Origin: Oculina patagonica
Taxonomy: Eukaryota
DNA: 64,000 nucleotides
Reading direction: 5' to 3'
NCBI RefSeq assembly: GCF_052425735.1
Contig: NC_135768.1
Location: 22,444,001-22,508,000 of the forward strand
Part shown: positions 90 through 56,496 of the stretch, in pieces
Numbering within the stretch: the stretch's first letter is position 1
How the letters are laid out: each line of letters begins with the position of its first letter
The notes under the pieces: generated by a model
Told to the model about the DNA's origin: nothing
Database searches by the model: none
The model's input: the letters and a program-made list of their open reading frames with translations, nothing else
Position numbers and translations under genes: made by a program

Positions 90-3000
90 TTAATCCTCTT
101 TCTTAAATCTTGGAAGAGACGATAAACTGTCTGTTATTCTTATATCTTTCCTTTTGACCCGACCAGACCTGTTTAACTCTTCCATCATTGATATCAGGTC
201 TAGCGTACGCCAGCGCTTGTTAAGAATCTCCAGCATCAAAGTCAAGTCGGTCCGGGAAATTACCATTAGAGTTTCTGGCAGTTTGTTTTGTGTCCACATG
301 AGACTGGATTCCTGCTGAACAACAAACTTAACTTTGTCTGGTATTCCGGTCACCAGCTTATCCAATACATCTTTCGATAACGTTGTCCACATTCTCTTTA
401 CGGTGTAAGACAAGTCAGGCCACGACACAAGGTCCGAGAATACAAAAACAGCAAATAATGAAAGGTTTCCTAAAATAGAAGCGTCATAAAAGACAGAACG
501 TCAGTTTTAGGATGTATAATGTGGCGACAAGGAATGTGAAAACTTATTCAGAGAAATTTTGTGTTCTCTTTACGACCACTAACTAGATATATTGAAATGC
601 AAGCACGGAGACCAATCTTTCTACTTTTTTTAGCTTTCTTCGCAGGATAAATTACAAGGGAAGCATGTACATCTTAAACACATGTCATAAAACTCGCGGA
701 TAGCACTACCATGCCGTGTAACGCTGTTATGAGAAATTGCCGGCTCGGTGCCAAAGGATCTGCCGGTTACGTCAAGTATCGCTATTAACATAACGTTTTG
801 CTTAGACAGACGACAATATAACGCCTTGTTATCCAACTCCAATCAGTAGAATGCAAATATAACAAGTGAAACGAGTTATATGTAGGCCTCCGTTCTAAAG
901 CAAGACCGTTCTCGGTGAGCTAAAGTTCTCTTCATCTCACAATAAAGTTTTCCGAAATTACCTAGAACTGTTAAGCCGATATAAAAATAATGATGGAAAA
1001 TGAAAACGTCAACGAAAACAACTAACCTTTATTTTATTTAGAAAGTTATTAAACTAAAAGAGCTTAAAGCTATGTGTTCAACCACCATTCATGGATTTCA
1101 TGGATAAATTAATAAATAAACAAACAAACAAAAAAAAAAACAAATAAATAAACTCGCTGATAGAACGTGATCGCGCGTGCGTTGTTCTGTAAAGGGACAA
1201 TTTTTCATTATTTTTGACTTAAAAGTACATAACATTTGAGGTTTTGGACTGCAATCCTTTAGAATTTCTACTAAAACAATAAGACTACTCACCCTCGTTT
1301 TATATGAGCGATGGTCAACTCGGCTGTGCCTTGTTGACTATCCGCCCATAGAAATCTGGAGCGTACAGTATAGTTGTTAAAGTGTATATCAAACGGTTTT
1401 TTTTATTTGCCTGATCGAATGTACGTGGAATGCTGATGGGAACATCGAAAAAAGAAATACCGAAATCTCTTTTTTTCACCGCGTTTTCGCGCTCTGAAAT
1501 GGTGAAATTTCACTTCCGGTTGGGTCCAAAACCGCGCACATTGGGGAGCTGGGTCTATTCTGCTTTTGACGTCACGGCCGATCTAGACCCAGCTCCCCAC
1601 GGTGCGCCGTGACGTCAAACAAGAATGCGCTCAGTGATACACTCAATAACCAAACAAACCAAACATGGAATTTTAAAGCTGCGACGGCATAGATTTAAAA
1701 TCGCTAAAAACACAACAACACGTGCGCTACTTCTAAATTCGTTTTGAGCCTAATACGTCAAGATTAAATACCGCCTTTTCATTTTACTTACCTGTACATT
1801 TGCTGATATGATATATGATAGCTTTATTTTCACACGCTGTTTCCATGGGCTTTTCTAAAGAAACTATTATTACACTAGTATCCCTCTAGACTTCAGATCA
1901 TTTATAAACTTCCAAGCCTTTAGCTTTTTTTTCGGTTTTCCGGCAACCAAGCCGCAATCTTCCCTGTTCAGTTTGTTTGGTTCTTGAGTGTATCACTTGT
2001 TTGACGTCACGGCGCCCAGTGGGGAGCTGGATCCAGACCGGCCATGACTTCAAAAGCAGAATAGACCCAGCTCCCCACTGTGCGCGGTTTTGGACCCAAC
2101 CGGAAGTGAAAATATTGCGTGTTTTAGGTCAAAAACGCGGTGAAAAAAACGAGATTTCGAATTTCTTTTTTCGATGTTCGCATCAGCATACCACGTAGAT
2201 TTGATCAGGCAAAAAAAAAAATCTGACATATACACTTTAAATAAAAAACGTAAAAATCCAACTGTTAAGTGTAGTACACTGAATAAGCTCGTTTTACAGG
2301 ACATCACGGCGACCATATTGGTGTTTCCAAACAATGAAAATTATTCTTATGCAAACAACTTCTACTGTTTGGAACACCGATGGCTACCGCGAAAAAGATC
2401 TATATTAGCGTTAGTCAAGTTTTGAAGTAAATTGTACAAAACACTTTAATAAAGGTAATTAAGGATATTTTTTTCTTATTATCACTAACCTTGATTGTGT
2501 ATCCAACTGTCAATGACCGATGACGCAGCCAACTTGGCCTCATCTATCTCCTTACATACCTCCGGTTCTATCTTTTGGATCTCACCCTGTAGTGTTTGCG
2601 TCTCTGATCGCGTCTCCCTACCAAATTTCTTCTTGTCGTCAACAAGCCTTCTTTGCCTGTCAATTACTTTTATCTCCTTTTGCAGGTTAAGTAGCTCTCC
2701 TAATTTTCTGCATTGAATTGTAGTTACCTCGCTCTTGGAGTTAAGATCTTTAAAAAAAGAATCAATCCCTTTTGTGCCACGACTCCCGACACGAGCATCA
2801 ATAATCAAAACAGCAGCATTGCTATGATACGTTGTGGGACGCTCAGCAGTTCTCCTCAATTTTTCTATCTCGTGTAAAGGGAGAGCGGCCCGCAGCGATC
2901 TTGCGGGGTGCGATTTCCTTGGTTTCTCCAGCAAATCCACGAGGTCATACAACTGTAATGCCTCAAACACTTCTTTCATTAGCTTCACAGGAGTGTCCGG

Positions 3001-6000
3001 AAAGTATTTGACAAGATTAACCAATGTGAGCCCACCGAATTTTTGTTTGATTCCGATTCCAAATGACTGATATAAATGTTTTATAGCAACATTGTCAACC
3101 ATTAGCCTTATTGACAGTTCCCTGATGACTTCTATACTGAGATCCTTTAAGCGAAGTGCATAGAGGTCATCTGAAAACAAGAATAAAAAACAACAAAAAT
3201 GAGATAATAGTCAGTTAATGTATAATATAGCTGTGTAATAAGAAAAAGTCGGTTTTGAGGTTAACTTTCTTTTAACTCCTGCAATCCCTACAACCCCTGA
3301 AAAAGGTACCCCTTTCGGGCGCAGCCTTTCCGTATAGTCTACCATAGGGAGGCTCCCCCCGGGTCCGTATAGAAATACCAAGGGTTAATATTCTCCCATT
3401 ACGGACACGAGCAACCTTGGTTAATTAGACAGTTATTGCTCAACTGAAAAATATTTTTATAGATATAAGTGGAAAGCAAAAGAGATGAAAAGAACGGGAT
3501 ACAGTGGAACCCCGATATAACGATATGTCAAGGGAGCAGTAGAACTATATCGGGGTATCGTTATATCGAAACTCCCGATATAACGAGATGGCCGTAAAAT
3601 AACCGAAAATATCGTTATATCGGGGTCAAGCTAACATGTACTTCGATGTACTTCTTTACTGGATAACGAGGCTTAAAACACAGTATCAAAATTGTATATC
3701 ATCATACAAAGCTGTTGTCAAAAACGTTAGAGATTACTCGATGACAGTAAATTTATTGTATTAAATTAAGGGTTTTGCTTAAATTTTGACTGTGTTCTGT
3801 TAATATCGTTATATCGGGGAAGATTTTACGTTCGGTTCGCTAAATTCTCATCGTTATATCGGGGATATCGTTATATCGAAGATCGTTATATCGGGGTTCT
3901 GTCCCATACATTTTACTGTAACTTTTGCCGGGACATAGAATATTCATCGTTATATCGGGAATATCGTTATATCGAAGATCGTTATATCGGGGTTCTGTCC
4001 CATACATTTTACTGTAACTTTTGCCGGGATATAGAATATTCATCGTTATATCGGGAATATCGTTATATCGAAGATCGTTATATCGGGGTTCCACTGTACT
4101 GACCGAGGAACCACCGGACGGATGTTTTGGTTGGAAAAGAATTCCCTAACGTTGTTTTACAAACCAATAGAAAGTTCGAGTGTTTCTTATGCGACTAGCT
4201 TATTGTTTCTCTTTTGTAATCCATTACAATGCACGTATCCGCGCGGGATTATATGACATAACACCCGGTCCAGTAAGAGCTAAAACAAAATTAGTACCAA
4301 CAGGATGCGATGTTAGACGCTGTGTTTTCTTTACGTTTGGGTTACTCAAGTTCATGTTTATTAATTATAGTAATTTATGAATTATGTAACAATTTAGAGC
4401 CCTGTCATGACTCCGATCGAATCACATAGATATCAGTATTGTTCGAGAATGCAAAATTGCATCACCAGTGTATGAAGTTGTTGTATTGACTATAATAAAG
4501 TGATGGCATAATTATAACGAAATATGCATTCAGTTTGTCTTCATTTTTAGAAACGAATTTTGTGTTGTGAATTGAAGGAACATTGGAATAAAAGCTTGCA
4601 AATGACAACACTTAGTGAACGTGATGGAAACAAAATTAAAAAAAATTAAGGGGGAGATCTGCGATCTGCGCTGTGACACCTGCAATGAAGGTATCTCATT
4701 GGTTTATTATAGTTACTGGCCCTCAGATTACTTAAGTCGTGTAATAATAATGTCGAATATTGTCCAAATAACTTGTTGATAGTTACCAGAGATGTCTTCC
4801 ATTCCAATATCAGATGGTGCACCATGTGTTCTTATCCCGCTATCACTCGTCTCTGTCGTCATACTCTGCGTCTCATCACGGATGTTCTGTAGGTAACTCT
4901 GAACGAACGCGTATTTCTCGGAATCAACATATCTCGCTTCATCTCCAACAGATATTTCCTGGGCTCCCTTACCCCCTGTAATCTCCTCGTCTCTTGCTTT
5001 GTAATACAAATCTGAATCAGAATGTCTTCGACGGCTTGTTCCAGGTCTTTCAAGCTTTTCCGTTTCTTGAGCTGTGAAAGGTAACGTGCATCAACAATGT
5101 TAAAGATCGTAGCCAAACTGAATCACTCGTAGAGACAACCATTTAAAGTTGTTTTAATCTCTAACTTTTTTGTGACCGCGATAAAAGTCCCCCCCCCCTC
5201 CCTAAAAAAGGCTCGTCGCGAAGATCATACGTTTTCAATCATCTGTAATAAACATTCCAAAAGGATAGATCGGAGAGCCTTAATACGGTACAATTTTTTA
5301 GTTCCAAAAGCGATGGTGGGCTTTAAATTTAAAGAGGACATCATTATTCCTGAACTGCAGCCGCTTTAGTAGCGTTGTTTTTCAACGCTTTTCACGTTAC
5401 AAGCCATGCACATTTCTGTTTCCGTGCAGAATTATTAGAAACATACTGATAAATAAAACGTTAAGCTCTTACAATCCCTACCATTTACTTCCTCCTGCCA
5501 GTCCAATCTCCTCAGTGCATTTTTCGCTTCCGCAATCTCGGCTTTTAGCTTCTTGTTTTCCTCTTCTAAAGCTTGCAGTCTTTGGCTGTAAAAATTCAAC
5601 TTGTTTTCTGCATGTTTTAGTTTCATCAAAGTTACGTCATCTTCATTTGTTTTGAAGCAAAGAAAAGAGTCGGAGTTCCTTCGACGTCTTCCTGCAAGTG
5701 TTTCTTCGTCTTTGATATCAGACACTGAAAGAAATTCAATGAAAAAAATAATGATGAATTTCTCCTGAATTTTGCATGACCACCGTCTCAGGTTAATCTG
5801 CCTTAACTATACAGATAAATCTGTAAATAAATTTGAGAATCACGAATACTTGACACGGAAAATAAGAATGTAAAATACATATTAAGCCCCTACGCCAGCT
5901 TATAAATTTTACGATTATATTATTTTGTTCCAATTGCACGGAATATAGACAACTTCAGAGGAGATGTTTCGGATGAGGTTTCTGTCTCGCTTGCATTCCT

Positions 6001-9000
6001 CGCGTTTCATTTAACTCACACCATGAACACTGCGCAACAAATCTTGCCGCCTTTTTATACACCCCTTTTTTAAATCAAACTTAAACGTCCACAACACCCA
6101 GTCGATTTACAATTTAAGAAATTCAAAAGATCGATCAATTGCTCGTTTAAGAATTTACGCAAAATGCTACCAGCGACCGAAAACAAAATTTACTGTTCAA
6201 CTATCGATACAATTTGGGATGAGACTCAGATCGCGCACGCGCAGTGCAGGGTGCCTTGGGGGCGGACAATCACGTGGAAACCAAACTTTTTCGGCTGGAT
6301 GGGTTTACCATGATTTTGAAGAAGCATTAGACCAAGATAAGCCTCCTTATACTCCTGTTCGTCGATAAACACAGACACCTCAACGTCTTTACCATTCGCC
6401 AGCTCTTTGACTTCTTCAGTGACAAGGAATTCTTGAAGGCGACTCTGCAATGTTCCACTTTTGTAGATGTCCCATAACTCCTTCAAAGCTGAGGATGTCT
6501 CTGCTTGCACAGTGAAGCACAGGGATCCCTCACTGATCTCAACCAGTTTAGTATATGAGACCAAAACCACTTTGTTAAAGACTTCCACGAATTCGTCAAG
6601 ACTGGAGCAGCTACGTAGAGCCATTCCACTGGAAACCACCAGAAGACCTCCAGCGATCGTACGTATGTTACAAACCATCTTAATGGCTGTTGAAACAAGA
6701 CAATAGGTAAGTGTTGCTGAACGTAATGCTTTGATAATTAATTCTGTGGTACGTTTGAGCACTTAAAGTAAAACGGGAATTCCCTTTTGAGTACAAGGGT
6801 GAATGAATAATTATCTGAAAGATTGGAAAACCAGAGGGGGTTTAGAGAATCAAAGGCACCATGATATTAAGGGAAGGTAGGTAAGTTGAAGTCTGTGTCA
6901 AGCCAAGTGGCCCATACCACTGCAGCTTATCCCAATTTCTGTAGCATTAAGTGACTGGGAGTATTTCTACCCTCTTGGATGGGATGCTAGTCCATCGCAG
7001 GGGTTACCTTCCTCCAAGCATTATTTCTACATTTCTACACCTGGGTGGAGAGGGGGCACTATGAGAGTAAAGTGTCTTGTCCAAGAACACAACACAAATG
7101 ATCCAGGTCAGGGCTCAAACCCAGACCCCTAAATCCGCAGTCCAGTCCAGTTACCCAGGGGGGTACTCAAAGTATACATGACAGGGGGGGAGTGGCCGAC
7201 GTATATTTTTATGAGTTAGAAATTTACATGCTTGGTATTTTTGGGGGTCTGTCTGTTTCTTTAGGGCTTAAAAATGATATGCGTATTTTTTGAGTCTTAT
7301 ATCTGGGCGAACTTTTCGTTTCGGGTTTTCATTGTAATCAGTGGATCAGAAAAATATTCATTTGCACTTTTTTTCAGCGACGTGCATTAGAAAGTTCTGC
7401 TTAATTGAATAAATTAGTATTGAAGTATTTAAGTCTGGGTTGGAAATTTTGATGCCAGGTATTTTTTGGGGTCTAAAATTTTAGGCTTGTGCATTATTTT
7501 GGTTTTGCAATATGAAGCTCTGTTGGACCCCCCCCTCCCCCGTCATGTATACTTCAAGTACCCCCCCAGTGCAGTTACCATTAGGCCACTGTGTTTCCTA
7601 GGGTAAGGGGAGCCCAAAGTTACATTAGTTATACTCATAGGATGTGGAGAGGGCCTATATACAATATTCCAAATACATGTATCTGTGTTATTTTAGGACA
7701 AATTGGCATTTGTGCAAAGGGGGGACAAAGTTGTGTGCACTTTCTGACTGTTCAAGGGTTACATGTAGCTGGTGATAACTTAATTACTTAGCTAACATTC
7801 ACTATATAAAGCTCATTCCCCCTTTTCCTGGTAATTATTGCACTGTTCTTGAGGGAATGAGGAACCACATGAGGTACACACACACAGACAGAAAACATTT
7901 TAACATTGATAGGGCATTGTTAAGTAAGCTAATTTTGGGGCAATTGGACCAGTCATTTGTCAATATGTTTATACTTTAAAAAAGGTAAGGTAAAGTCTGT
8001 GTCTGAGCCAAGTGGCCCATACAGCCGGAACTTATCCCGGTTTCCGTAGCATTAAGCAACTAGGAGTATTGCTAGACATCGCAGAGTTTTTTACTCCCCC
8101 AGCAGTAGAGAAATTCACCAGTACCCCTTTATACACCTAGGTGGAGAAAGGCACTGTGAGAGTGCCTTTGTCTTGCCCAGGCACCGCCCCGGGCAGGGCT
8201 CGAACCCGGGCTGTTTGACACGGAGTCGAGTGCGCTAACCATTAGGCCACTGCACCTTTCATGTGTTTATACTTTAGCCAGAGTTGAATATTTACAGAGA
8301 AGTTTCCCTTTGCATAACTAGAAATGGACGAGGTGGTTGTCAACCAAACTTTTTTGATCCCCCCTCCCCCATCAGTGATGCAAAAAAAAAATATTTGGCC
8401 TTCATTTACAGGCAGCCACCCTCCCCATAAATAATTACCACTCCCTTAATTCTATGGAAATTGCTTATCTGCAGGTGTTTACGGTAATATGAATTTTTGT
8501 TCAAAAGAATTTTATATTGTATACATTTGTTATTGTCTTTACAAGTGTACCAAGATTTCAGTTCTTGAGCTTTTGGCCACTTCAATGACTTGATCCCATC
8601 AGTGGCCTTGTTTATCAGTAAATGGCCGCACCGAGCAACAGCAATTTACTCCCAAGGTAATGGGTTTGAATCACAACAAGGTCAAAAAAGTTTTTGGTCT
8701 CATTTTTCATAGTAATTGGGACTCACAGAAGGAAATTCACAGCGTTATTTTCTCAGTGCTAAAATTACTACACAGTTTTAAGATTCTGTTATTTACAGTT
8801 TGAGTAGCTAGTGTTAGTGCTGTGCGGCTGAACATTGCATTGCACCTGCAGCCTTCAAGTCTAATAAAAAGCTGTATTTCCTTAACTGTTGAGTAGCCAT
8901 CTAAAAAAATTTAATCATTTTTTTTTTTTTAATTAAGTCATAAAAGGGGGCAACCAAGCTCATTTCTAAGCTGTAATGACAGGCTAATTGTCAACCGTAG

Positions 9001-10096
9001 TTAATTGTCATGGTGATGCTTAAAATGTTTGGTCCCATGATTATTTATCATATTTCATTTGATCAACGGTATTAACTTCAAACTGCTACAGTACAAAGTC
9101 AAAATTTATTCAAACTATCCCTCAAGGCTGTCTGCAATGTCAGGTTTATGCCGATGGTACTAAATGGAATGCAGGTACAGGTTGATTGTGGGAGTACAGT
9201 GCACTGGACTCAAGAGCGGTGCCTCTCTAGCCCCAGGTGTATAAATGGGTACCAGTGAAACTATTGCTGTGGGGTAACCCTGTGATGTACTAGCATCCCA
9301 TCCAGGGGGCAGCAGAAATACTCCTAGTTGTTTCACGGCATGGAAACCAGGATACCTACTCAACCAGGATATAACCAAAAATAAAAGATCATATTTGGTT
9401 AAATAAAATAATATTTCAGTTGACATGTTTATGCAGCCTGTTACGTTGCCTCCAAAAACACCAGGGTTGCATGTGGTTTGTTTAAATCTATTTTCTGTCT
9501 AACTCACCTCCTTTTATAGATGTTGCCGCCCGCTTCAACGATGAAACGATACCAACTGATTGGGCTGAAATAAAAGCAGTAGTAATATATAAATCCCTCG
9601 GGGGTAAAAACCACACATCGTAACGTAAAATACGGGTTCTAAAGGGACAAGCACGGAAACTTAGTTAAAGATCACAGAATGACCAAGTAAGGAAACAGTT
9701 AAATTGAAGTTACCAGATTAGTTCAATCGTTTTGTGTATTATAAATAACTGACTTCCGGCATCACAAATTTGCATGTAAGCTTATGTAACCTAGCGTTAT
9801 ACTAAAACATCAAATTCAATTGGAATACCTTTTCTTTTGATCTCAAACTTCTCCACCTTCTTAAGCAGCGGTCGTTTCTTCATCTCTGATAATATCTCTT
9901 TCAGAGTGTCTAAACGATCAATTCCAAGGGAATTGTGTTTCTCTAGTTGTTTAAATAACGCGAGTACATCTCGAATGTTCTCTTCACTGCCTTTCGCTAT
10001 CTTATTTCTGCACATAAAAACCAATCTTGGCAGTTGGTTTCCGTCAAGTTTCTCACTGATCTCGAAAAGAAGATTATTATACTCGATTTCTGACAT
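90..10096 (-). CDS. Multi-domain death-fold protein: DED, TRADD-N-like domain, coiled coil, death-domain-like region, degenerate caspase-like domain (744 aa, 6 coding exons)
   Basis: Exons 10096-9829, 6686-6309, 5724-5482, 5071-4787, 3170-2490 and 469-90 are joined by GT-AG phase-1 introns into one open 2235-nt frame. Exon 1 is DED-like (EYNNLLFEISEKLDGNQLPRLVFMC...LFKQLEKHNSLGIDRLDTLKEIL). Exon 2 GSLCFTVQAETSSALKELWDIYKSGTLQSRLQEFLVT resembles invertebrate TRADD-N-like domains. Gene model confidence is higher than confidence in the C-terminal domain calls. Small extra exons in intron 1 cannot be excluded. Confidence 0.85.
1381..2236. mobile_element. Non-autonomous DNA transposon, Kolobok-like, with long TIRs
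   Basis: TTAA at 1377-1380 and 2237-2240; termini AGTGTATAT...ATATACACT; about 250-bp imperfect inverted arms. RR..YY termini with a TTAA target fit Kolobok. Confidence 0.8.
3502..4096. mobile_element. Tc1/mariner-type MITE with an internal 96-bp tandem repeat
   Basis: TA|CAGTGGAACCCCGATATAACGA ... TCGTTATATCGGGGTTCCACTG|TA; about 2.6 copies of a 96-bp unit at ~3845-4090; many TCGTTATATCG motifs. Confidence 0.9.
6890..7592 (-). mobile_element. tRNA-derived SINE (family A) interrupted by a CCCGGG-type TIR element (~7155-7568)
   Basis: Reverse-complement similarity to the SINE at 10757-11035. The SINE head (CATTAGGCCACTG) resumes at ~7580 after an insertion with GGGGGGTACT...AGTACCCCCCC termini, with CAGTTAC on both sides. 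Confidence 0.75.
7984..8258 (-). mobile_element. tRNA-derived SINE (family A)
   Basis: Minus strand reads GTGGCCTAATGGTTAG (A box) ... GGGTTCGAGCCC (B box), a shared core (CTCCACCTAGGTGTATAAA) and a TTTACC tail. Confidence 0.85.
9190..9355 (+). mobile_element. Degenerate SINE family A fragment
   Basis: Core CCCAGGTGTATAAATGGGTACC...TAGCATCCCATCCAGGGGG shared with 10757-11035. Confidence 0.75.
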
Positions 10097-13541: not shown

Positions 13542-15689
13542 ATGAATATTTCTAAGACTTCATCAGTCGGGAGTGAAAATAATTGTAAAAGCCGTTATGT
13601 CTTCAACAGTATTCCTTGGCGAAATTCTTTATCCGATTCATTTTATGGCTTGCTAGTCGGCGCAGCTGTGTTTAGCTTGGCGACTTGTTCTTTTACCATC
13701 CTTTTAAACGCAGTGGTTATGGTTGCCGTGAAGACCAAACGACGACTTCAAAGAAACGCCAACATTCTGCTGGCTTGTTTGGCGCTTACTGATCTGATGG
13801 TTGGGCTTGTTGTACAACCTCTTCACATAACCAAGACTATTTTCCTGTTACAAGGTAAAGAATTTCATGAACTTTGTGACATTGATTTGGCATTTACTGT
13901 CAGCTATCTCACATTCGTCGTCGCTACAGCGTGTCATTTGGTTTTAATCAGCGGAGAGCGATATCTTGCCATAAAACACACCTTCATTCACTTTGAAGTC
14001 ATCACTAAAACTCGCCTCATGATTTCCTCTACCGTGGCGTGGATCGCAGCTCTTACTTTCTTCCCTATCGTTTCTTATTTACCAATCTATTTATTTGTTT
14101 CACAAGGAACAATCCTTTTCTTAATCGTCTTTTTCCAGATTCTCGTTTACAAGGAAGCCCACCGCCATGAAAAACAGATTCTTTCACAACAAGTTTCCTT
14201 AGAGGCCAGAGCAAAATTTAACCAAGAAAAGAAAGCCTTAAAACTAACCACAATAATATTAGTGGCAATTATTCTGTGTTTCACTTTACCATCAATTTTT
14301 GCCCTCATTACGCAAAAGCTTTTCAAAGAAAAATTTACACCTGAAGTGAAAGCTTTAGTTCTCCATCTAGGTCGTCTGCCTGTGATTTTAAACTCAGTTC
14401 TTAATCCAGTAATTTACTCAGTACGAAAGAGGGAGTTTCGAGTTGCTTTTATTGAGTTGCTTTTAAGAAAAACTTTTCAAGAAGCTGACGAATTTGATAA
14501 GAGACTGTTTGGATCGCCAAACAATGTTGTGAGACTGCAATTGCAACGTGGGCAAGAAGGCGAAGGGACAGAACGAAACGGCGCGGAAAGAAATGTGGCA
14601 CAAGCTAACGTTAACCGTGAAGATAACCCTGAAGTTTTCGCTTCTGGCGCGAATTTGGATGAAAACAACACTGTCGCTAGACAGAACAAGCCTGGTTCCT
14701 CAAGTACACACAACATTGCATCTGAAAAGACACAAGAAGAGATAAGAAATTCCGATGACAGAAATGTGGCCAAAGCAATCGACAACCACGAAGATTATCC
14801 TGAAGTCTTTGCTTCTGGCGCGAATTTCGATGACAACAACACTGTTGCTAAAGAGAAGAAGCCTGGCTCCTCAAGTGTACACAACAGCATATCTGAATTT
14901 AAGACACAAGAAGATTATGGCTTGAGAGGAAATTCCGAGGACAATAATGTGGCCGAAGCAATCGACAACCATGAAGATTTTTCTGAAGTTCTCGCTTGTG
15001 GCGCGAATTTGGCTGACCACAACACTGTTGCCAGACAGTACAAGCCTGGCTCCTCAAGTTCACACAGCAGCACATCTGAAAAGACACAAGAAGATTATGG
15101 CAAGAGAAGAAATTCAGACCACGGTAAAAAGCAGCAGGAAGATGACCCTGAAGTCCTCGCTTCTTGCGCGAATTTGGATGACAATAACACTGTCTCAAGA
15201 CAGAACAAGCCTGTCTCCTCAAATGCACACAACAGCACATCTAAAAAGACACAAAAAGATCACGGCACCTTTCATGGCGAGAGAAGAAATTCCAAAGACA
15301 GAAATGTGGCCCAAGCAATCGACAGCCATGAAGATAACCCTGAAGTTCTCGCTTCTGGTGCGAATTTGGATGACAACAACACTGTTGCTAAAGAGAACAA
15401 GCCTTGCTTCTCAAGTGCACACAACAGCACATCTGAGAAGACACAAGAAGATCATGACGAGAGAAGAAATTCAGACCACGGTAAAAAGCAGCAGGAACAT
15501 GATCCTGAAGTTCTCGCCCCAGGGGTTAGTTTTGAAAGGGAAAGCACTGACCCCACCCCTAACGAGAGCTTATCCTCAAATGAAAGCATCAGAGACGAAG
15601 AAACACAGCTACAAATACGAGTGGACGAATTCGGCGAACCGTTGGACATTGAAACTGTGGAAGAACTCACATACGACACATATTTCTAA
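13542..15689 (+). CDS. Intronless class A (rhodopsin-like) GPCR with long repetitive C-terminal tail, 715 aa
   Basis: Seven hydrophobic segments; TM2 LALTDLMVGL, TM3 ERYLAI, TM6 CFTLP, TM7 LNPVIY, helix 8 REFRVAF; very short ECL2. Ligand class cannot be assigned. Confidence 0.93.
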   Translation: MNISKTSSVGSENNCKSRYVFNSIPWRNSLSDSFYGLLVGAAVFSLATCSFTILLNAVVMVAVKTKRRLQRNANILLACLALTDLMVGLVVQPLHITKTIFLLQGKEFHELCDIDLAFTVSYLTFVVATACHLVLISGERYLAIKHTFIHFEVITKTRLMISSTVAWIAALTFFPIVSYLPIYLFVSQGTILFLIVFFQILVYKEAHRHEKQILSQQVSLEARAKFNQEKKALKLTTIILVAIILCFTLPSIFALITQKLFKEKFTPEVKALVLHLGRLPVILNSVLNPVIYSVRKREFRVAFIELLLRKTFQEADEFDKRLFGSPNNVVRLQLQRGQEGEGTERNGAERNVAQANVNREDNPEVFASGANLDENNTVARQNKPGSSSTHNIASEKTQEEIRNSDDRNVAKAIDNHEDYPEVFASGANFDDNNTVAKEKKPGSSSVHNSISEFKTQEDYGLRGNSEDNNVAEAIDNHEDFSEVLACGANLADHNTVARQYKPGSSSSHSSTSEKTQEDYGKRRNSDHGKKQQEDDPEVLASCANLDDNNTVSRQNKPVSSNAHNSTSKKTQKDHGTFHGERRNSKDRNVAQAIDSHEDNPEVLASGANLDDNNTVAKENKPCFSSAHNSTSEKTQEDHDERRNSDHGKKQQEHDPEVLAPGVSFERESTDPTPNESLSSNESIRDEETQLQIRVDEFGEPLDIETVEELTYDTYF
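14586..15525 (+). repeat. Coding tandem repeat in the GPCR C-tail (5 full units plus 1 partial, ~55-64 aa each)
   Basis: Recurring ED.PEV.ASGANLD.NNTVA...KPGSSS.HN..SEKTQE...RRNS; all indels preserve frame. Confidence 0.95.
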
Positions 15690-19796: not shown

Positions 19797-19927
19797 NNNN
19801 NNNNNNNNNNNNNNNNNNNNNNNNNNNNNNNNNNNNNNNNNNNNNNNNNNNNNNNNNNNNNNNNNNNNNNNNNNNNNNNNNNNNNNNNNNNNNNNNNNNN
19901 NNNNNNNNNNNNNNNNNNNNNNNNNNN
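19797..19927. other. Assembly gap (131 N)
   Basis: Run of N. Confidence 1.
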
Positions 19928-21197
19928 GTTTGCTTAAAGTCCTTAGCGCCGAGACCAAACCATGGTCCTGGGGCACTAAAGGGTAGCCAGTTTTTAGCTT
20001 GACAACACCCTCCTCAAAATATGCGCTGTACCCAGCAAGGTTATCTTCTGTAGTTCACTGATGCTTATTTGGCCGGGGATTCTTCCAATATAACTCTCTA
20101 GTCCCTTTTTGATAGCTCCAAGTGCTCCAATGATAACTGGTATCGTTTCCGTTCTCATGCCCCACATTCGGCTTGTTTCGATTTCCAAGTCCTTATATTT
20201 AGATAGTTTTTCAGTGACTTTCACGGATGTGTTTCTGTCTGATGGTACTGCCATGTCAATAAATTTACAGGTTTTCGTTTTGTGGTCTTTAATCACTATA
20301 TCTGGTCTGTTGGCTGTTATTTTCCTGTCTGTGTGTATGGGCATGTCCCATAATATTGTGACATCCTCATTTTCTGTAACTGTTTCCGGTTCATGGTCAT
20401 ACCACTTTTCTGATGTCTCTATATTATAGTTGTGATAGACTTTCCAGTGTATATACGCGGCTGCTTTATCGTGTCGGTGGATATATTCTGTTTTCGCAAG
20501 TTCAGGGCACCCAGACACGATATGGTCGATTGTTTCGTCGTATTTGTTACACATCCTGCATAGGGGGCTAGTACCGTCTTTGATAATTCTGGCGTGGTAT
20601 GATCTGGTAGCTAGGCTTTGGTCTTGGGCTGCGATTATGAATCCTTCTGTTTCTGCCTTCAGTCCACTGCTTTTCAGCCACTGGTTGGTTTTGTGGTGGT
20701 CGACATCTGCTTCCTTTATTCTCTTTGGGTATCTCCCATGGAGAGCTTTGTCCTCCCACTGCTTTGTTAACTTTTCTTGGGTCTTATTTCGTGCCATTTG
20801 TTTGGTTCTCTTTGCACATTTTGTGGTTGTTTCATCTGCTCGTTTGTCTGGGATTTGTAGGTCTAGTTCTTGTTTGAATTGCTCTGCTTGCTTTTGTATA
20901 GAGTACAATTTCTTTCTGCCATCATGTTCTTGCACTAGTTTGATTAGGGCATCATTAAGTATGTATCGAGCCCTATCGTGGTTGTTTTGTAAGAGGCTTC
21001 TAATTGGATAAGACCCCTAGCACTAGCATTTCTTGGGAGGTAGAGCCTGTCTACATCTGCTTTGGTGTGATGCATCTTTGATAGGGTGAGTAGTTTTCTT
21101 GTTTTTGTGTCTAACCTCTTGATTTCACTCATCTTCCAGTCGATTATGTTAAAACTGTAAGTCACCACTGGGATGGCTAAGTCACCACTGGGATGGC

Positions 21198-21797: not shown

Positions 21798-24155
21798 TTA
21801 CACAGGGTTCTCGGCTAGCTCCAAGTGATTGTCAGTTTCTGTAATTGTTATTTCAGAAGACACATGTGTGGTTTTCTTGCAGATTAAACGTAAAGATAAA
21901 AACTCTTTCCTATATTCTTTGTTGCTGAGAAAGTAAATCCATGGATTCACAACAGAGTTGGACATCGACAATATCAGGGAAACTTTGGTTCCAATTTGCC
22001 CTTCAAAACCGAATTGAAACAAAATATAAATGATCTGACTTGGGAGCCAGCACCCTGTTAGGACAGCGGCTGTGATAGCACACATGCGCAACAGCAACTT
22101 TTGTTGGGTTTGCGCCTGCTGCGTACTTCCAAATAAGGACGGAGCTGCTTTAATACGATACCAAATATGGATAAATGAAGCCCAGATAATCATTGTCGGA
22201 ATAAGAAATGTTACAGTGGCGTAACTTATAGCAAAAGCCTGTTGCCCCACCTTACCAAAATTATTAGGAATAGATACGCACGTATTATTCTTAAATTCGA
22301 TTTGGGTAAACCTATCAATCAGCAATAAAGCACTGCAGACGAAAATACCCACTATATACATGAAAACATTTTTCCTGGCAAAGAAAACTTTGTGCCTAAA
22401 CGGTATAATTACTGAAGACCATCGTTCTAATGCTAACAGTGTGACAGTCAAGATAGACGCTTTGCTGAGAAGAAATACAAAAAACCTGTTTTCAATCAAA
22501 TAGCAGAAAATATACCCAGCAGGGCCCACGAGGGATGGATCGGTGGTGATGTGAAACAGCGGTGTTGCAAAAATAGTCACCCCTGCAAAGAAAAACAGAA
22601 ATTAATTACATCTGTAGATTTTTTTGAAAAGGCCCAGCAGTGATTAAAGGATCACTTTTCTTTGAAATGTCAATACATATTTATGCAAGCAAGTCGCAAT
22701 GAAAACAAAGCTGGTCACCAACAGGGAATTTAATACCTTAAAATAATTGGTAATTGTATGAAATACTGTTATATATTGATTAATATGGTAAATGGTTTGA
22801 ACCCAGGAGTATCAGTAGGTCGTATAGTGTGATCGTCCGTTTGAGAGTAGTTCTGAGAAGAACTGTTGTTGGTGAATTGATTAATGTAAGCAGAATTTGC
22901 ACTTTGGCAAATTGGCTTATGTCCTATCGGGGATAACGAGAATTTAGTAAGTAAGGAAATGGTTCCAATAAACTAAGGACGATCAGAACTGGTATTCTGA
23001 TAAAAAGATACATTAGTAATCTTAGTAATTGTAAGTTAACATTTTTAAGTATTTTAGTATTTTTCAATTAGTATTTGTAAATTAGCAACTTTAATTTTGT
23101 AACACGACCCCACAAGAGACAGGTTTAATTTATATCGTACATAAATAAAAGTTTTTGCATTGTATTGTATTGTATCTTTGTCGTTGCCTTTGTTGCTCCA
23201 CTATTTAACTTGAAATGGATGATTGCTACTCCGGCCGGTTGCTGCGCGACAATATGAGTGAATTTCTTGTAATTTAAATATTGAAATTTATAGCTTGATT
23301 TTATATCACATGAAAATAGATTTTGCAAAAAAGACCCCAGTCGCAAATTAAGGGATCTTCAGAAAAATTCCTAATATTTGATTTGTAGTGCTGTAGGTCC
23401 CGTATTCCTTTCTCCCTCTACAGTCTAGTTTTTCCTTTTAAAATATTGGAACGTCCTGGAGCAAATTTATGATCTTGTATGGACTGATTGAGTTTACTTC
23501 TCAAACAAGCAACTGCTGGCCGCTTGAAATTTATCATTATATATAAAGGGACTATGTCACCGATTTTAACAGACTTTTGAACAGCCAAAATTTACATTGG
23601 TGTCGTAGAAAACTTAAAATAGTGGTCTATTTGTATTAACAATTGCCATTTTAGAGCACTCGAACTGTTTAAAAGCGCGTTTGGCTGCGGATGGCTCAGA
23701 TGGAAATGGATTGCAATTTGAAAACGTTAGCCAACGTTTTCAAGTTGTTTCCAGTGTTTCAGCCGGGCGCCTTCTAAAAAATCGATATTTATAGCCGAAG
23801 TTTGATTTCTATCCCCGAATAAAGGTTATATCTTCAGTTAAATGTTCAAAGATAATGTTTTTCATGGGTAAAGTTGCTTACCACTTATTTCGGAACACGG
23901 TTTAGACCAAAAATCTATCTACAAAGTCCCCATGACATAGTCACTTATATCTATGTGTGCTGAAGATTAGTTTGAATTCAAGAATCAACTAATGTTACCT
24001 GTCATCATATCAATCGTAGCTAAAGTCAGCAGTAGAATATTGTGAGGCTTTTTCAACCAGACGGGCTTCTTATACAGCAGAAAACAAAACAGAGCGTTGC
24101 TGACAATCGACGCCGTTGCAATGAAACCAAACGTGGCCCCAAGCGCTGCACTCAT
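21798..24155 (-). CDS. Class A GPCR, 2 coding exons, 313 aa
   Basis: Exon 24155-23999 (MSAALGATFGFIATASIVSNALFCFLL...HNILLLTLATIDMMTG, TM1-TM2) splices in phase 1 to 22582-21798 (LALERW, CWLP, NSVVNPWIY, KEYRKEF). An in-frame TGA lies just upstream of the ATG. Confidence 0.9.
23546..23945 (+). mobile_element. Kolobok-like MITE family K, full copy in the GPCR intron
   Basis: AGGGACTATGTCAC ... ATGACATAGTCACT; high similarity to three other copies. Confidence 0.88.
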
Positions 24156-48759: not shown

Positions 48760-49753
48760 ATGAAATCCATTTATTTCCTGTTGTGCCTGACTTTCGCGAA
48801 GGCCCATCCTGCATACGAACAAATTCCGGTAAGTTTTACAAAGACATTTATAAACGTTTTCCTTGGAAAGCTGACTTGCAGTTGGGCGGAGATTTTATGT
48901 TAGTTCTTATACGTCGAATCGTACTCGTAAATAACATAATCGCAAATCATGGCCGATGCAAATTTCGTCGCCTTTGGTACAGACTGGCAAATGATTTTTT
49001 GCAGTATCTGGAGCCCGTTCGTAAGTAATTCAGCCACATTTTATGTTCTTTTTTATTTAGGTTCTCGGAAGCATCAACTCGAAATTGAACGAATTCATTC
49101 CGCGATCTTGTCTGGACTACTTACAGCATGGCAAAAACGAGAACGATTTCTACTGGCTTTATGACGATCAAGACAAGCCTTATGTGGCTTTTTGTGACCT
49201 CTCGTACGAGCCTGGATCAGCTTGGACTTTAGTCGCGTCTTGGGCGACAGCAAAATTCCGAGAATTACCTCATTTCAAGACCAAGCCATTTCCGGTGAAC
49301 TCGCCACTCAACGAGAATACCCCGAACTGGAACGCCTTTCGCCAGACTCGGGATCGCATGTACAGCGTGCGCAAACGGTCCACGCATTGGCGCGCAACTT
49401 GCGACATAAACCATCAGCAAACAATCGATTACCAGGATTACCTCAGGGGTAAATTCAGCAGCTTCGATATCATGTCGTGGCTTGGTGGCCGCACTTGTTG
49501 GCCGGTAGAATATGTGAATATTCTTGGAAATACTGGCGTAAGTGGCATCACCGTAGGGTTTTGGCAGAAAGATGGTATGTATTTTCTTCACACCGACAGC
49601 TCAAATACTACTTGCGAATTTATCGCTGAGGCAACGCCTTTAGTTGATTACTTTGGTTACTATAAAGACGGATTAAGCTACAACTTTCGTTGTTCCCGAT
49701 ATGATACTTCTACAACACAATGGTGGTTTGGCGGATACTTACAAGAAGACTGA
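48760..49753 (+). CDS. Secreted fibrinogen-related-like protein, paralog A (253 aa, 2 exons)
   Basis: Exon 48760-48828 encodes a signal peptide (MKSIYFLLCLTFAKA) and splices in phase 0 to 49061-49753. PRSCLDY...Y.L.....Y.AFCDL...GSAWTLV resembles the N-terminal subdomain of fibrinogen-C/intelectin folds; ends STTQWWFGG. Confidence 0.88.
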
Positions 49754-54532: not shown

Positions 54533-56496
54533 ATGAAATCCATTTATTTGCTGTTGCTTGTAACTTTCGCAGAGTCTTATCCCGATCATGAAGGAATCCT
54601 GGTGAGTTTACATAGGCAATGTTAAGACGTCTTTGTCTTTGAAAGTTGACTTGCAATTTAATAGCGCGTAGGTTATTGCTAGTTGATATCCCGGGGGGGG
54701 TACTCCATATAATGGCCTATACGGGGAGGCTCCGCCCGAAAAGGGTACCTTTTTCAGGCTTCAGGTATATAAAAGGGTAGGGATTTCACAAGTTTAGGTA
54801 TATGAAAGGGTATCTAAATCCGTCATTTACGTTTTCAAAAGGGCCTTGAATTAAAATATTTCGAACAGACGCAATTTATGGCTGTATTATTTTAATTTAT
54901 TAAGCGCAACATGAAAATTACAAGAAAACGTCCTCTTCTAAGTCTATGCCATGTCTTTTAGGTATATGAAAGGGGTACCTATTTTCAGTAAAAGGTGTAC
55001 GAAAGGGGTACAATTTCTGTGAAAATGGTATATAAAAGGGTAAGGGGTAAGAGCTTGGGGCGGAGCCTCCCCGTATAAAACTTTTTTTGAGTGCCCCCCC
55101 CCCCCCCCCCCCGGGGTTGATATCATCTGCAACAGTAAGAATCACAAGTTGCCAGGTCTGTACATGTGCAGAACGTTTCGTCTTTCTAACTACATGGCTC
55201 CAAGGCTTTGGGTCTAAAAAATGGCCGGCTCCAGGGCTCCAGAACCGTGCTTTGAGGCAAAGGTTTTCAGCGCCTCCATGATCAGCAGAAAAATCTCTGG
55301 GGGGAGGGGGGTACACCCATATATGAGCAATATATATAGGTATGTGCCGCTGTGAAGGGTATGGTTTTTTAAGCAGCTTAGTCTGGGATAGGGCATAGAA
55401 ATCAGAGAATTTTGGGCTAGAATAGGATGTCATTTTCCGGAAACTGAACGGTGGTATGGTGGTATGATGAATTAGTTCAGAATAGGAACAGAAACTCGGA
55501 AGAGAAAGAGAGTTTCCTAAACGTAAATAAAATCATCACAGCAATGTTTTTGAGAGATGGTTTGCTATTAAGTCTGGGATAGGTAGGGAGTTTGGTGTCT
55601 AGTCTGGTATAGGGTTGCAAAATCAACTAAACATGGTCTGGTATAGGGTTAGGGTTTCAGAGTCCCAGCAGGACTCCTCCACCCAAAAATATACAGAATA
55701 CCTCCCCGGGAGCAAAATAAGTTTAGGGCTCTGAGCAAAAGAATGGGGAGCCAGCCACACGCAATTTCGCCTTCTTCATTTTATTTTTTTGTATAAATTT
55801 TAGTCTCTCAATAGCACCAACTCGAAAGAAGAAAGATTCATTCCCAGATCCTGTTTGGACTACTTGCAACATGGCGAACATAAGGATGGCTTTTATTATC
55901 TCCATGACGACTACGATCAGCCCTACATGGTTTACTGCGACCTGTCAAATGAGCCCGGGTCAGCCTGGACTCTAGTCCTATCTTGGTTTTCAGTGTACGC
56001 CCGGTTTTTGCCTTATTTTAGTAGCAAGGCATTTTCTGAAGACGCGCCAATCAACGCAGAGACTCCGAACTGGTACATTTACCGGCAGAATCTGGCTCGC
56101 ATGAACACCATCCGCAAACACTCGACACATTGGCGCGCAACATGCGACTACCAGAGGACGCAAACGATCGAGTATCAAGATTACCTCAGGGGCAAATTCA
56201 ACGACTTTGACATCATGAAATTTCAGGGGAGTGGTTCTTGTCGGCCAGTAGAGTATATCAATATTCTTGGAAAAACTGCTAAACATGGCGCCACCGTGGC
56301 ATTCTGGCAGGAGCCTGGTAACTATAGTCTTCACATCTTCAGTTCTAATACTGACTGTGACTTTGCCCCTTGGTTTGAACCATATTGCGACTTCTTCGGT
56401 TTCTATGGCGACGGGCTTAACACTATATTCCGTTGTTCTCTGTATGATAATTCTACAACGCAGTGGTGGTTTGGTGGATACTTAAACGAAAAGTGA
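54533..56496 (+). CDS. Secreted fibrinogen-related-like protein, paralog B (253 aa, 2 exons)
   Basis: Exon 54533-54601 (MKSIYLLLLVTFAESYPDHEGIL) splices in phase 0 to 55804-56496. Exon lengths (69 + 693 nt) and Cys/Trp pattern match paralog A. Confidence 0.88.
54690..55115. mobile_element. CCCGGG-terminus MITE with 8-bp target duplication (P- or hAT-like)
   Basis: GTTGATAT|CCCGGGGGGGGTACTC ... GAGTGCCCCCC..CCGGG|GTTGATAT. Confidence 0.88.
55295..55710. mobile_element. Second CCCGGG-type MITE in the paralog B intron
   Basis: AGAAAAAT|CTCTGGGGGGAGGGGGGTAC ... ATACCTCCCCGGG|AGCAAAAT; internal TCTGG(G/T)ATAGGG repeats. Confidence 0.75.

Follow-up and report, generated by a model that had tools for sequence, protein, structure and literature searches.

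The gene considered here, ACROYT_G036221 of the coral Oculina patagonica, lies on the minus strand between positions 10096 and 90 of a 64,000-nucleotide stretch of contig NC_135768.1 (NCBI RefSeq assembly GCF_052425735.1, positions 22,444,001 to 22,508,000), which is referred to below as the window. We propose, with somewhat better than even confidence, that its seven exons encode a 763-residue cytosolic adaptor of the DED/TRADD-N type that carries a dead caspase fold and tunes caspase activation and TRAF signalling. The domains of the protein follow one another in the order DED, TRADD-like N domain, coiled coil, acidic linker, predicted death-fold domain and predicted caspase-fold domain. What appears to be undescribed, and to be the sole addition made here to an existing catalogue of such proteins, is the caspase-like identity of the last domain, which the catalogue calls 'domain1', along with the variable stalk inserted in it.

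A predicted caspase fold without catalytic residues

The caspase fold is built on a six-stranded sheet in which the elements run b1-a1-b2-a2-b3-a3-b4-b5-a4-a5-b6, with the catalytic His after b3 (in the motif SHG) and the catalytic Cys after b4 (in QACxG). Residues 405-763 of the deposited protein (P0181) were modelled with AlphaFold2 (AF2) from a 50-sequence alignment, giving a mean predicted local distance difference test score (pLDDT) of 86.1 and a predicted template modelling score (pTM) of 0.85. The elements of the alpha/beta domain in this model run b1-a1-b2-(two long hairpin helices)-b3-a3-b4-b5-a4-a5-b6, which is the caspase order, including the two helices between b5 and b6.

When the model was compared with the PDB by Foldseek, at least 500 matches were returned, 65 of them at E ≤ 0.001. 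The best 50 are all caspases (E 1.7e-5 to 6e-4, probability 1.00, template modelling (TM) scores of 0.41-0.61 normalised to the caspase chain), and among them are caspase-6, -9, -11, -4, -7 and -3, drICE, CED-3 and the protease-like domain of cFLIP-L (3h13, E 5.1e-4). In a separate library of viral proteins the top three Foldseek matches are again caspases, one from an ascovirus and two from pithoviruses.

Mapped by topology, the catalytic loops of ACROYT_G036221 read S-D-L after b3 and Q-E-S-S after b4. No Cys occurs in the 13 columns after b4 in 28 relatives, and a His after b3 is not conserved, being found in 3-5 of the 28 and at non-conserved columns. Because neither catalytic residue is conserved, the C-terminal domain is read as a caspase-fold pseudo-enzyme, that is, as a predicted catalytically dead caspase-like fold. 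Other residues of the domain are invariant in the 28 relatives (K685, L705, R723, D728, E735, R738 and S754) or nearly so (E703, L753 and K722, each in 27 of 28), and at the sequence level they point to a conserved binding surface, not to decay. The part of the domain encoded by exon 7 carries the conserved motifs KRW..LDL.SMM.E..R and LSSLPRF.

The two long helices form a hairpin (aa 565-635) that is inserted between strands 2 and 3 of the caspase-like domain. Its length varies from 41 to 163 residues in 28 relatives, and its mean identity is 16%, whereas that of the flanking parts is 36-48%; when Oculina paralogues that neighbour one another are compared, the corresponding figures are 43% for the hairpin and 68-79% for the flanking parts. 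A coiled coil placed inside the caspase-like domain would explain why the fold has gone unrecognised. Pfam has no match in the last three exons of the six-exon model described below, nor in the C-terminal ~350 residues of ACROYT_G036221, and Peptidase_C14 is absent among the 25 families listed of the 108 that any of 50 members of the family matched at E ≤ 10.

A predicted death-fold domain

The death fold is an antiparallel bundle of six helices. Upstream of the caspase-like domain, AF2 predicts a helical bundle at aa 416-492, made up of five helices and a short N-terminal turn, with a pLDDT of 72 when modelled alone and of 72-93 within the larger model. The isolated model (residues 410-504) gave 44 Foldseek matches, about 35 of which are death-fold domains (TM 0.58-0.66, best E 0.34). 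The best are the death domains of Pelle, UNC5H2, TRADD/p75NTR, NF-kB p105 and IRAK4 (E 0.34-3), and the DEDs of caspase-8/cFLIP and PEA-15 come next. The Pfam families Death, DED, CARD and PYD have no match in this region. The same segment was independently labelled 'Death' by Kaur et al. (PMC8195603). We take the Foldseek result as fold-level support for a death fold, short of proof.

An earlier note on this DNA, made from the letters alone, had read the start of the large exon as death-domain-like and the remainder as a caspase fold lacking activity, and had named structure prediction among the checks. Both folds are seen in the AF2 models and their Foldseek matches, the caspase fold without its catalytic dyad and the death fold at E-values of 0.34 or more.

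The N-terminal half

The DED recognised in exon 1 by the earlier note is borne out by Pfam (PF01335, residues 6-85, E 3.6e-19, 69.2 bits against a cut-off of 35.9); a database search with the DED region returned close paralogues only and recovered no coral caspase. The TRADD-like N domain that the note had placed in the next of its exons is likewise present in the right segment, at residues 137-200 of P0181 (TRADD-like_N, PF20694, E 9.4e-8, 32.2 bits against a cut-off of 23.7), although the residue pattern quoted for it is one position off in two places. No classical TRADD-N family is found among the Pfam matches of the exon translations. Homologues carry the label TRADDN-DEDD2 in Kaur et al. 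(PMC8195603), and the assignment of the domain to the DEDD2 clade is taken from these labels in the published table.

The coiled coil that follows also survives: the Pfam coiled-coil family matches of exon 4 are weak, every one of them under its curated cut-off, and the equivalent segment of relatives is labelled 'Coiled-coil' by Kaur et al. (PMC8195603). Pfam has no match in exon 5. Exons 4 and 5 contain the motifs RRRRNSDS, RRRHSDS and TETSDSGIRT, which recur in relatives of other genera (Stylophora, Montipora and Desmophyllum), the exact string RRRRNSDS being present in 14 of the 22 relatives searched. These linker motifs may be regulatory phosphorylation or degradation sites. The DSGxxT core of TETSDSGIRT (aa 388), for example, resembles a beta-TrCP phosphodegron.

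Gene structure

Six minus-strand exons had been proposed for the gene (10096..9829, 6686..6309, 5724..5482, 5071..4787, 3170..2490 and 469..90). Spliced in silico they yield exactly the 744 aa claimed, with GT-AG sites at all junctions and all introns in phase 1, and window positions 10096 and 90 are the ends of the start and stop codons. This model is sound as far as it goes but incomplete. An additional in-frame exon of 57 nucleotides (9564..9508, minus strand, phase 1-1) lies between the first two exons, where it was exposed by a tblastn search with the closest full-length relative, which gave a 20-residue match at 9565..9506. The exon has a pyrimidine-rich acceptor (ttatttcag) and the donor gtgagt, and it is 90% identical to residues 90-109 of the Oculina paralogue P0143. 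The resulting seven-exon product of 763 aa is identical at every residue to P0181, deposited as 'hypothetical protein ACROYT_G036221 [Oculina patagonica]', and the gene is already annotated in GenBank with seven exons (assembly GCA_052425735.1, contig CM126645.1, at about 22.444-22.508 Mb for the window). Going by its sequence, the 57-nucleotide exon could be skipped with the frame intact. Since the domains of the N-terminal half each occupy their own phase 1-1 exon, the layout permits exon shuffling. The parts of the gene, all on the minus strand, are as follows.

9829..10096, minus: exon 1, aa 1-89, start codon and DED (Pfam PF01335); donor AAAG/gtattc
9508..9564, minus: exon 2, aa 90-108, the 57-nucleotide exon (splice sites, match to P0143, required for identity with P0181)
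6309..6686, minus: exon 3, aa 109-234, TRADD-like N domain (Pfam PF20694)
5482..5724, minus: exon 4, aa 235-315, RRRRNSDS motif (aa 247), then the coiled coil (Pfam matches under cut-off, recurrence of the motif)
4787..5071, minus: exon 5, aa 316-410, acidic Ser-rich linker with RRRHSDS (aa 329) and TETSDSGIRT (aa 388) (no Pfam match)
2926..3156, minus: first part of exon 6 (3170..2490), predicted death-fold (death-domain-like) domain, aa 416-492 (translation checked)
2713..2835, minus: exon 6, predicted N-terminal part of the pseudo-caspase, a short strand, beta1 (aa 529-535), alpha1 and beta2 (aa 558-563) (AF2)
2497..2709, minus: exon 6, predicted coiled-coil hairpin, aa 565-635, at the location of caspase alpha2 (AF2 helices at model residues 161-182 and 186-231)
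105..469, minus: exon 7 (469..90), predicted C-terminal part of the pseudo-caspase, beta3 (642-648), alpha3, beta4 (684-689), beta5 (704-709), alpha4, alpha5 and beta6
90..92, minus: stop codon TAA

The stop codon falls about 11 codons before the ends of several Oculina paralogues, and aligned sequence is still recognisable beyond it in the window. The intron between exons 5 and 6 holds a 96-bp tandem repeat (3848-4091, 2.5 copies, 98% identical) whose minus strand is open over 84 aa but shows no sign of coding.

Relatives and the published catalogue

An exhaustive HMMER search with exon 6 gave 142 representative relatives, of which the named ones all come from stony corals (Scleractinia), namely Oculina, Stylophora, Montipora, Desmophyllum, Orbicella and Porites. 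As described by Kaur, Burroughs, Iyer and Aravind (eLife 2021, PMC8195603), DED/TRADD-N proteins have undergone large lineage-specific expansions in cnidarians and in further marine invertebrates. Two relevant architectures are listed in Figure 4-source data 1 of that paper, and the same domain architecture as that of ACROYT_G036221 is catalogued in three other coral genera. Accessions of the table that were matched directly by our searches are Orbicella XP_020616562.1 (P0187), Stylophora XP_022808330.1 (P0018), PFX16518.1 and PFX16507.1, all of which align across the whole C-terminal module. The exon 6 query matches Stylophora XP_022808330.1 with E 6e-30, and Orbicella XP_020616562.1 matches the paralogue P0143 with E 1.9e-60 over 97% of the module. 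ACROYT_G036221 shares with the catalogued members both the domain order and the lineage-specific occurrence in many copies, and is, judged by its sequence and on all four counts considered, a member of the 'Death+domain1' subfamily of the cnidarian DED/TRADD-N expansion.

The earlier note had put the protein forward as a candidate new scaffold whose order of domains matched no named protein. This claim falls, in that the order had already been catalogued (PMC8195603) and the gene is in GenBank; since the domain order is on record, the architecture is largely that of an already described family. The search of cnidarian proteins that the note suggested does find the same architecture, in models from Oculina, Orbicella, Stylophora, Porites and Acropora.

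The AF2 model departs from the published table in one respect. Kaur et al. (PMC8195603) give the last domain the placeholder name 'domain1' and set a coiled coil between 'Death' and 'domain1', whereas in the model the coiled coil is a hairpin within one caspase-like domain, the first two strands of which lie upstream of it. The published alignment domain1.aln contains only XP_/EKC/OWF accessions (Crassostrea-type, taken as bivalve) and no coral, and the label may denote another domain there. An identity for 'domain1' is absent from PMC8195603 and from the literature surfaced by full-text search.

One relative has an unusual order. In the 682-aa Desmophyllum pertusum protein KAJ7377988.1 (P0097), the end of a pseudo-caspase module is followed by a TRADD-N domain and linker and then by the first half of another module; from this sequence, it looks like a mis-joined model across two tandem paralogues.

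A tandem array with exchangeable heads

ACROYT_G036221 is the first gene of a head-to-tail array, with three more family genes downstream, and at least eight paralogues lie on the same chromosome-scale contig of Oculina. The next gene, ACROYT_G036220 (1052 aa), is located about 12 kb downstream in the same orientation and is 65% identical to residues 156-763 of ACROYT_G036221. In place of the DED it has an N-terminal HEPN_DZIP3 RNase domain (E 1e-41). It is followed by the DED-headed P0143 and then by a second HEPN-headed paralogue, so that HEPN_DZIP3-headed and DED-headed family genes alternate downstream of the window, all in one orientation. The array paralogues keep everything from TRADD-N to the C-terminus, and the N-terminal head is either a DED or a HEPN RNase. 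There is no paralogous copy of ACROYT_G036221 within the window itself, and its upstream neighbour is an unrelated rhodopsin-type receptor gene.

Comparison with known systems

ACROYT_G036221 has a DED and a caspase-fold domain in common with cFLIP-L (CFLAR) and caspase-8, and the catalytic dyad is absent from cFLIP-L too. However, cFLIP-L and caspase-8 have two DEDs, whereas ACROYT_G036221 has one (residues 6-85) and its caspase fold begins only at about residue 523. Unlike in those proteins, a TRADD-N domain, a coiled coil, a long linker and a death-fold domain stand between the two; there is also a 70-residue hairpin insert, a short b4-b5 loop in place of the cleavable intersubunit linker, and no detectable sequence similarity. 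Tandem DEDs directly before a dead protease domain, the arrangement of cFLIP, are not found in ACROYT_G036221. Two DEDs do occur in some relatives from Stylophora and Acropora, where they are likewise apart from the caspase fold. As for a catalytic caspase (family C14A), the fold agrees, but the His/Cys dyad and membership of Pfam Peptidase_C14 are lacking.

DEDD2/FLAME-3, like ACROYT_G036221, starts with a DED and continues with a TRADD-N domain, which is assigned to the same clade on the basis of PMC8195603, but it is described there as a single-copy nucleolar vertebrate protein and is without the C-terminal module of death fold and caspase fold. Vertebrate TRADD combines TRADD-N-type and death-fold domains in an adaptor without enzymatic activity, as is predicted for ACROYT_G036221; TRADD has no DED, coiled coil or caspase fold, and the classical TRADD-N clade is confined to vertebrates (PMC8195603). 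ACROYT_G036221 matches PF20694 (TRADD-like_N) only and has a far larger architecture than the ~310-aa TRADD, and it is not an orthologue of that protein.

In paracaspases of the MALT1 type, a death domain precedes a caspase-fold domain. A death fold N-terminal to a caspase fold on one chain is also predicted for ACROYT_G036221, which differs from MALT1 in having neither Ig domains nor catalytic residues; paracaspases are absent from the best 50 Foldseek matches, all of which are animal caspases.

A possible mode of action

In the family the body is constant from TRADD-N onwards, whereas the head is an adaptor (DED) in some members and an enzyme (HEPN) in others, from which we infer that the head is most simply the output. 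The death fold, the pseudo-caspase and the stalk would then form the input, through binding or regulation. Just as cFLIP-L pairs with caspase-8 by means of its dead protease domain, the C-terminal module could pair with a caspase-type protease domain, engage a death-domain partner, or both. The coiled coils would drive oligomerisation, and the exchangeable head would deliver the output, the DED of ACROYT_G036221 joining or nucleating DED assemblies of the FADD/caspase-8 type while TRADD-N recruits TRAF-type partners. In such a scheme ACROYT_G036221 would act in the immunity or cell death of corals by tuning the activation of caspases and signalling through TRAFs, and would not itself be a protease.

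Alternative explanations

Several results weigh against the proposed adaptor. None of the sequence methods connects the C-terminal region with either caspases or death domains: Pfam searches with the exons, the full protein and 50 relatives (E ≤ 10) gave only noise there, and PDB searches with single exons and two family profiles gave chance-level matches (designed proteins, a tRNA hydroxylase) and no caspase. The catalytic positions were placed by topology rather than by residue-level superposition, and the Foldseek E-values of the death fold (0.34 or more) are not significant alone, its model having a pLDDT of only 72. The HEPN-headed paralogues indicate that the C-terminal module needs no DED on the same chain. 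Finally, the partners, the direction of the effect and the oligomerisation are all matters that we infer.

The C-terminal alpha/beta domain could be unrelated to caspases, its likeness reflecting generic three-layer sandwich similarity or a modelling artefact, in which case 'domain1' would be a new fold family. The absence of a Peptidase_C14 sequence or profile signal fits this explanation, as do moderate TM scores (0.41-0.61), a high root-mean-square deviation (5-15 Å) and a sequence identity of 9-16%. A high deviation is nevertheless expected because of the 70-residue hairpin insert; moreover, the best 50 PDB matches and the best three from the viral library are caspases rather than other Rossmann-like folds, and the caspase order of elements, including the two b5-b6 helices, is seen in a model of high confidence. 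We regard an unrelated fold as distinctly unlikely. An artificial fusion in the gene model, of a DED/TRADD-N gene with a separate gene for the death domain and pseudo-caspase, is less probable still, and in our judgement very improbable. The C-terminal module does stand alone in some entries, such as Montipora XP_068745004.1 (435 aa) and transcript-like contigs of 351-420 aa. Yet all six introns are in phase 1 with canonical sites, RefSeq/GenBank models join the same parts in Oculina, Orbicella, Stylophora, Porites and Acropora, and short transcript-sized contigs encode the entire architecture in a single open reading frame (ORF), for example DED, TRADD-N and C-terminal module within 824 aa on 3.46 kb and within 905 aa on 4.97 kb.

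Two further explanations accept the dead caspase fold and differ as to its purpose, and each seems unlikely to about the same degree. The protein might be purely a brake, a dominant-negative of the cFLIP type that enters DED filaments through its DED and blocks dimerisation of caspase-8, itself receiving no signalling input. The pairing of a DED with a dead caspase fold is the defining feature of cFLIP-L, and 3h13 is among the Foldseek matches (E 5.1e-4); but there is a single DED, some 430 residues (including TRADD-N, coiled coil and death fold) separate it from the caspase fold, and the HEPN-headed paralogues retain the pseudo-caspase without any DED, which weakens a strictly cFLIP-like reading. 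Alternatively, the protein might be a decoy or tripwire sensor, in which the dead caspase and its hypervariable stalk mimic a host caspase and a caspase-targeting pathogen factor that binds or modifies them causes the release of the N-terminal head, a DED for apoptosis or a HEPN domain for RNA cleavage, much like the integrated decoys of plant NLRs. The coupling of one C-terminal module to two heads of output type in a single tandem array is in keeping with such a sensor. So is the stalk, which far exceeds every other part in variability (41-163 residues, 16% mean identity in the family, and 43% versus 68-79% in neighbouring paralogues), and Kaur et al. (PMC8195603) argue that expansion in tandem arrays characterises conflict genes. 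Variable coiled coils can, however, also drift neutrally, and the invariant surface-type residues of the pseudo-caspase core (KRW..LDL.SMM.E..R) suggest a conserved host partner. The fuller form of this idea, in which the C-terminal module is an integrated decoy for caspase-targeting pathogen factors that fires interchangeable heads, making these proteins a family of guard-type innate immune receptors of corals, seems to us slightly less probable again. The tuning adaptor with a dead caspase fold remains the reading that we prefer.

Other features of the window

The window has a GC content of about 38-43% and one assembly gap, at 19797-19927. The remaining features that were noted are as follows.

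13542-15689, plus: single-exon gene for a rhodopsin-type G-protein-coupled receptor, 715 aa (7tm_1, E 1e-24)
19994-20935, minus: 313-aa ORF with a weak zf-RVT match (E 6e-4)
21798-22580, minus: second 7tm_1 receptor ORF, 260 aa, matching the profile in its C-terminal part alone (positions 52-260)
49085-49753, plus: 222-aa ORF, no Pfam match
55855-56496, plus: 213-aa ORF similar to the preceding one, no Pfam match

The long C-terminal tail of the 715-aa receptor is encoded by about five repeats of a 183-bp unit (14589-15517, 76-80% matches). The second receptor ORF is by its sequence a gene fragment or else a single exon of a split gene. The 313-aa ORF abuts the assembly gap and is probably the tail of a retrotransposon ORF; retrotransposons often adjoin TRADD-N genes (Kaur et al., PMC8195603). 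The last two ORFs, about 6.8 kb apart, are clearly similar, sharing blocks such as STHWRATCD and TTQWWFGGYL, and may represent an uncharacterised gene in two tandem copies.

Implications

Corals hold large and poorly understood expansions of death-fold proteins, the C-terminal domains of which are mostly unnamed. The analysis of ACROYT_G036221 does not reveal a new architecture, the order of its domains being already in the literature. If 'domain1' is indeed a dead caspase, however, a whole subfamily would become comparable to the regulation of caspase-8 by cFLIP, with coral caspase-8, FADD and TRAFs as candidate partners. The case would also illustrate how a large helical insertion can conceal a caspase fold from every sequence method. 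Finally, the swapping of DED and HEPN heads on a constant dead-caspase body, for which exon shuffling is a plausible route since all introns are in phase 1, would provide a tractable case for how exon shuffling rewires the immune adaptors of animals.

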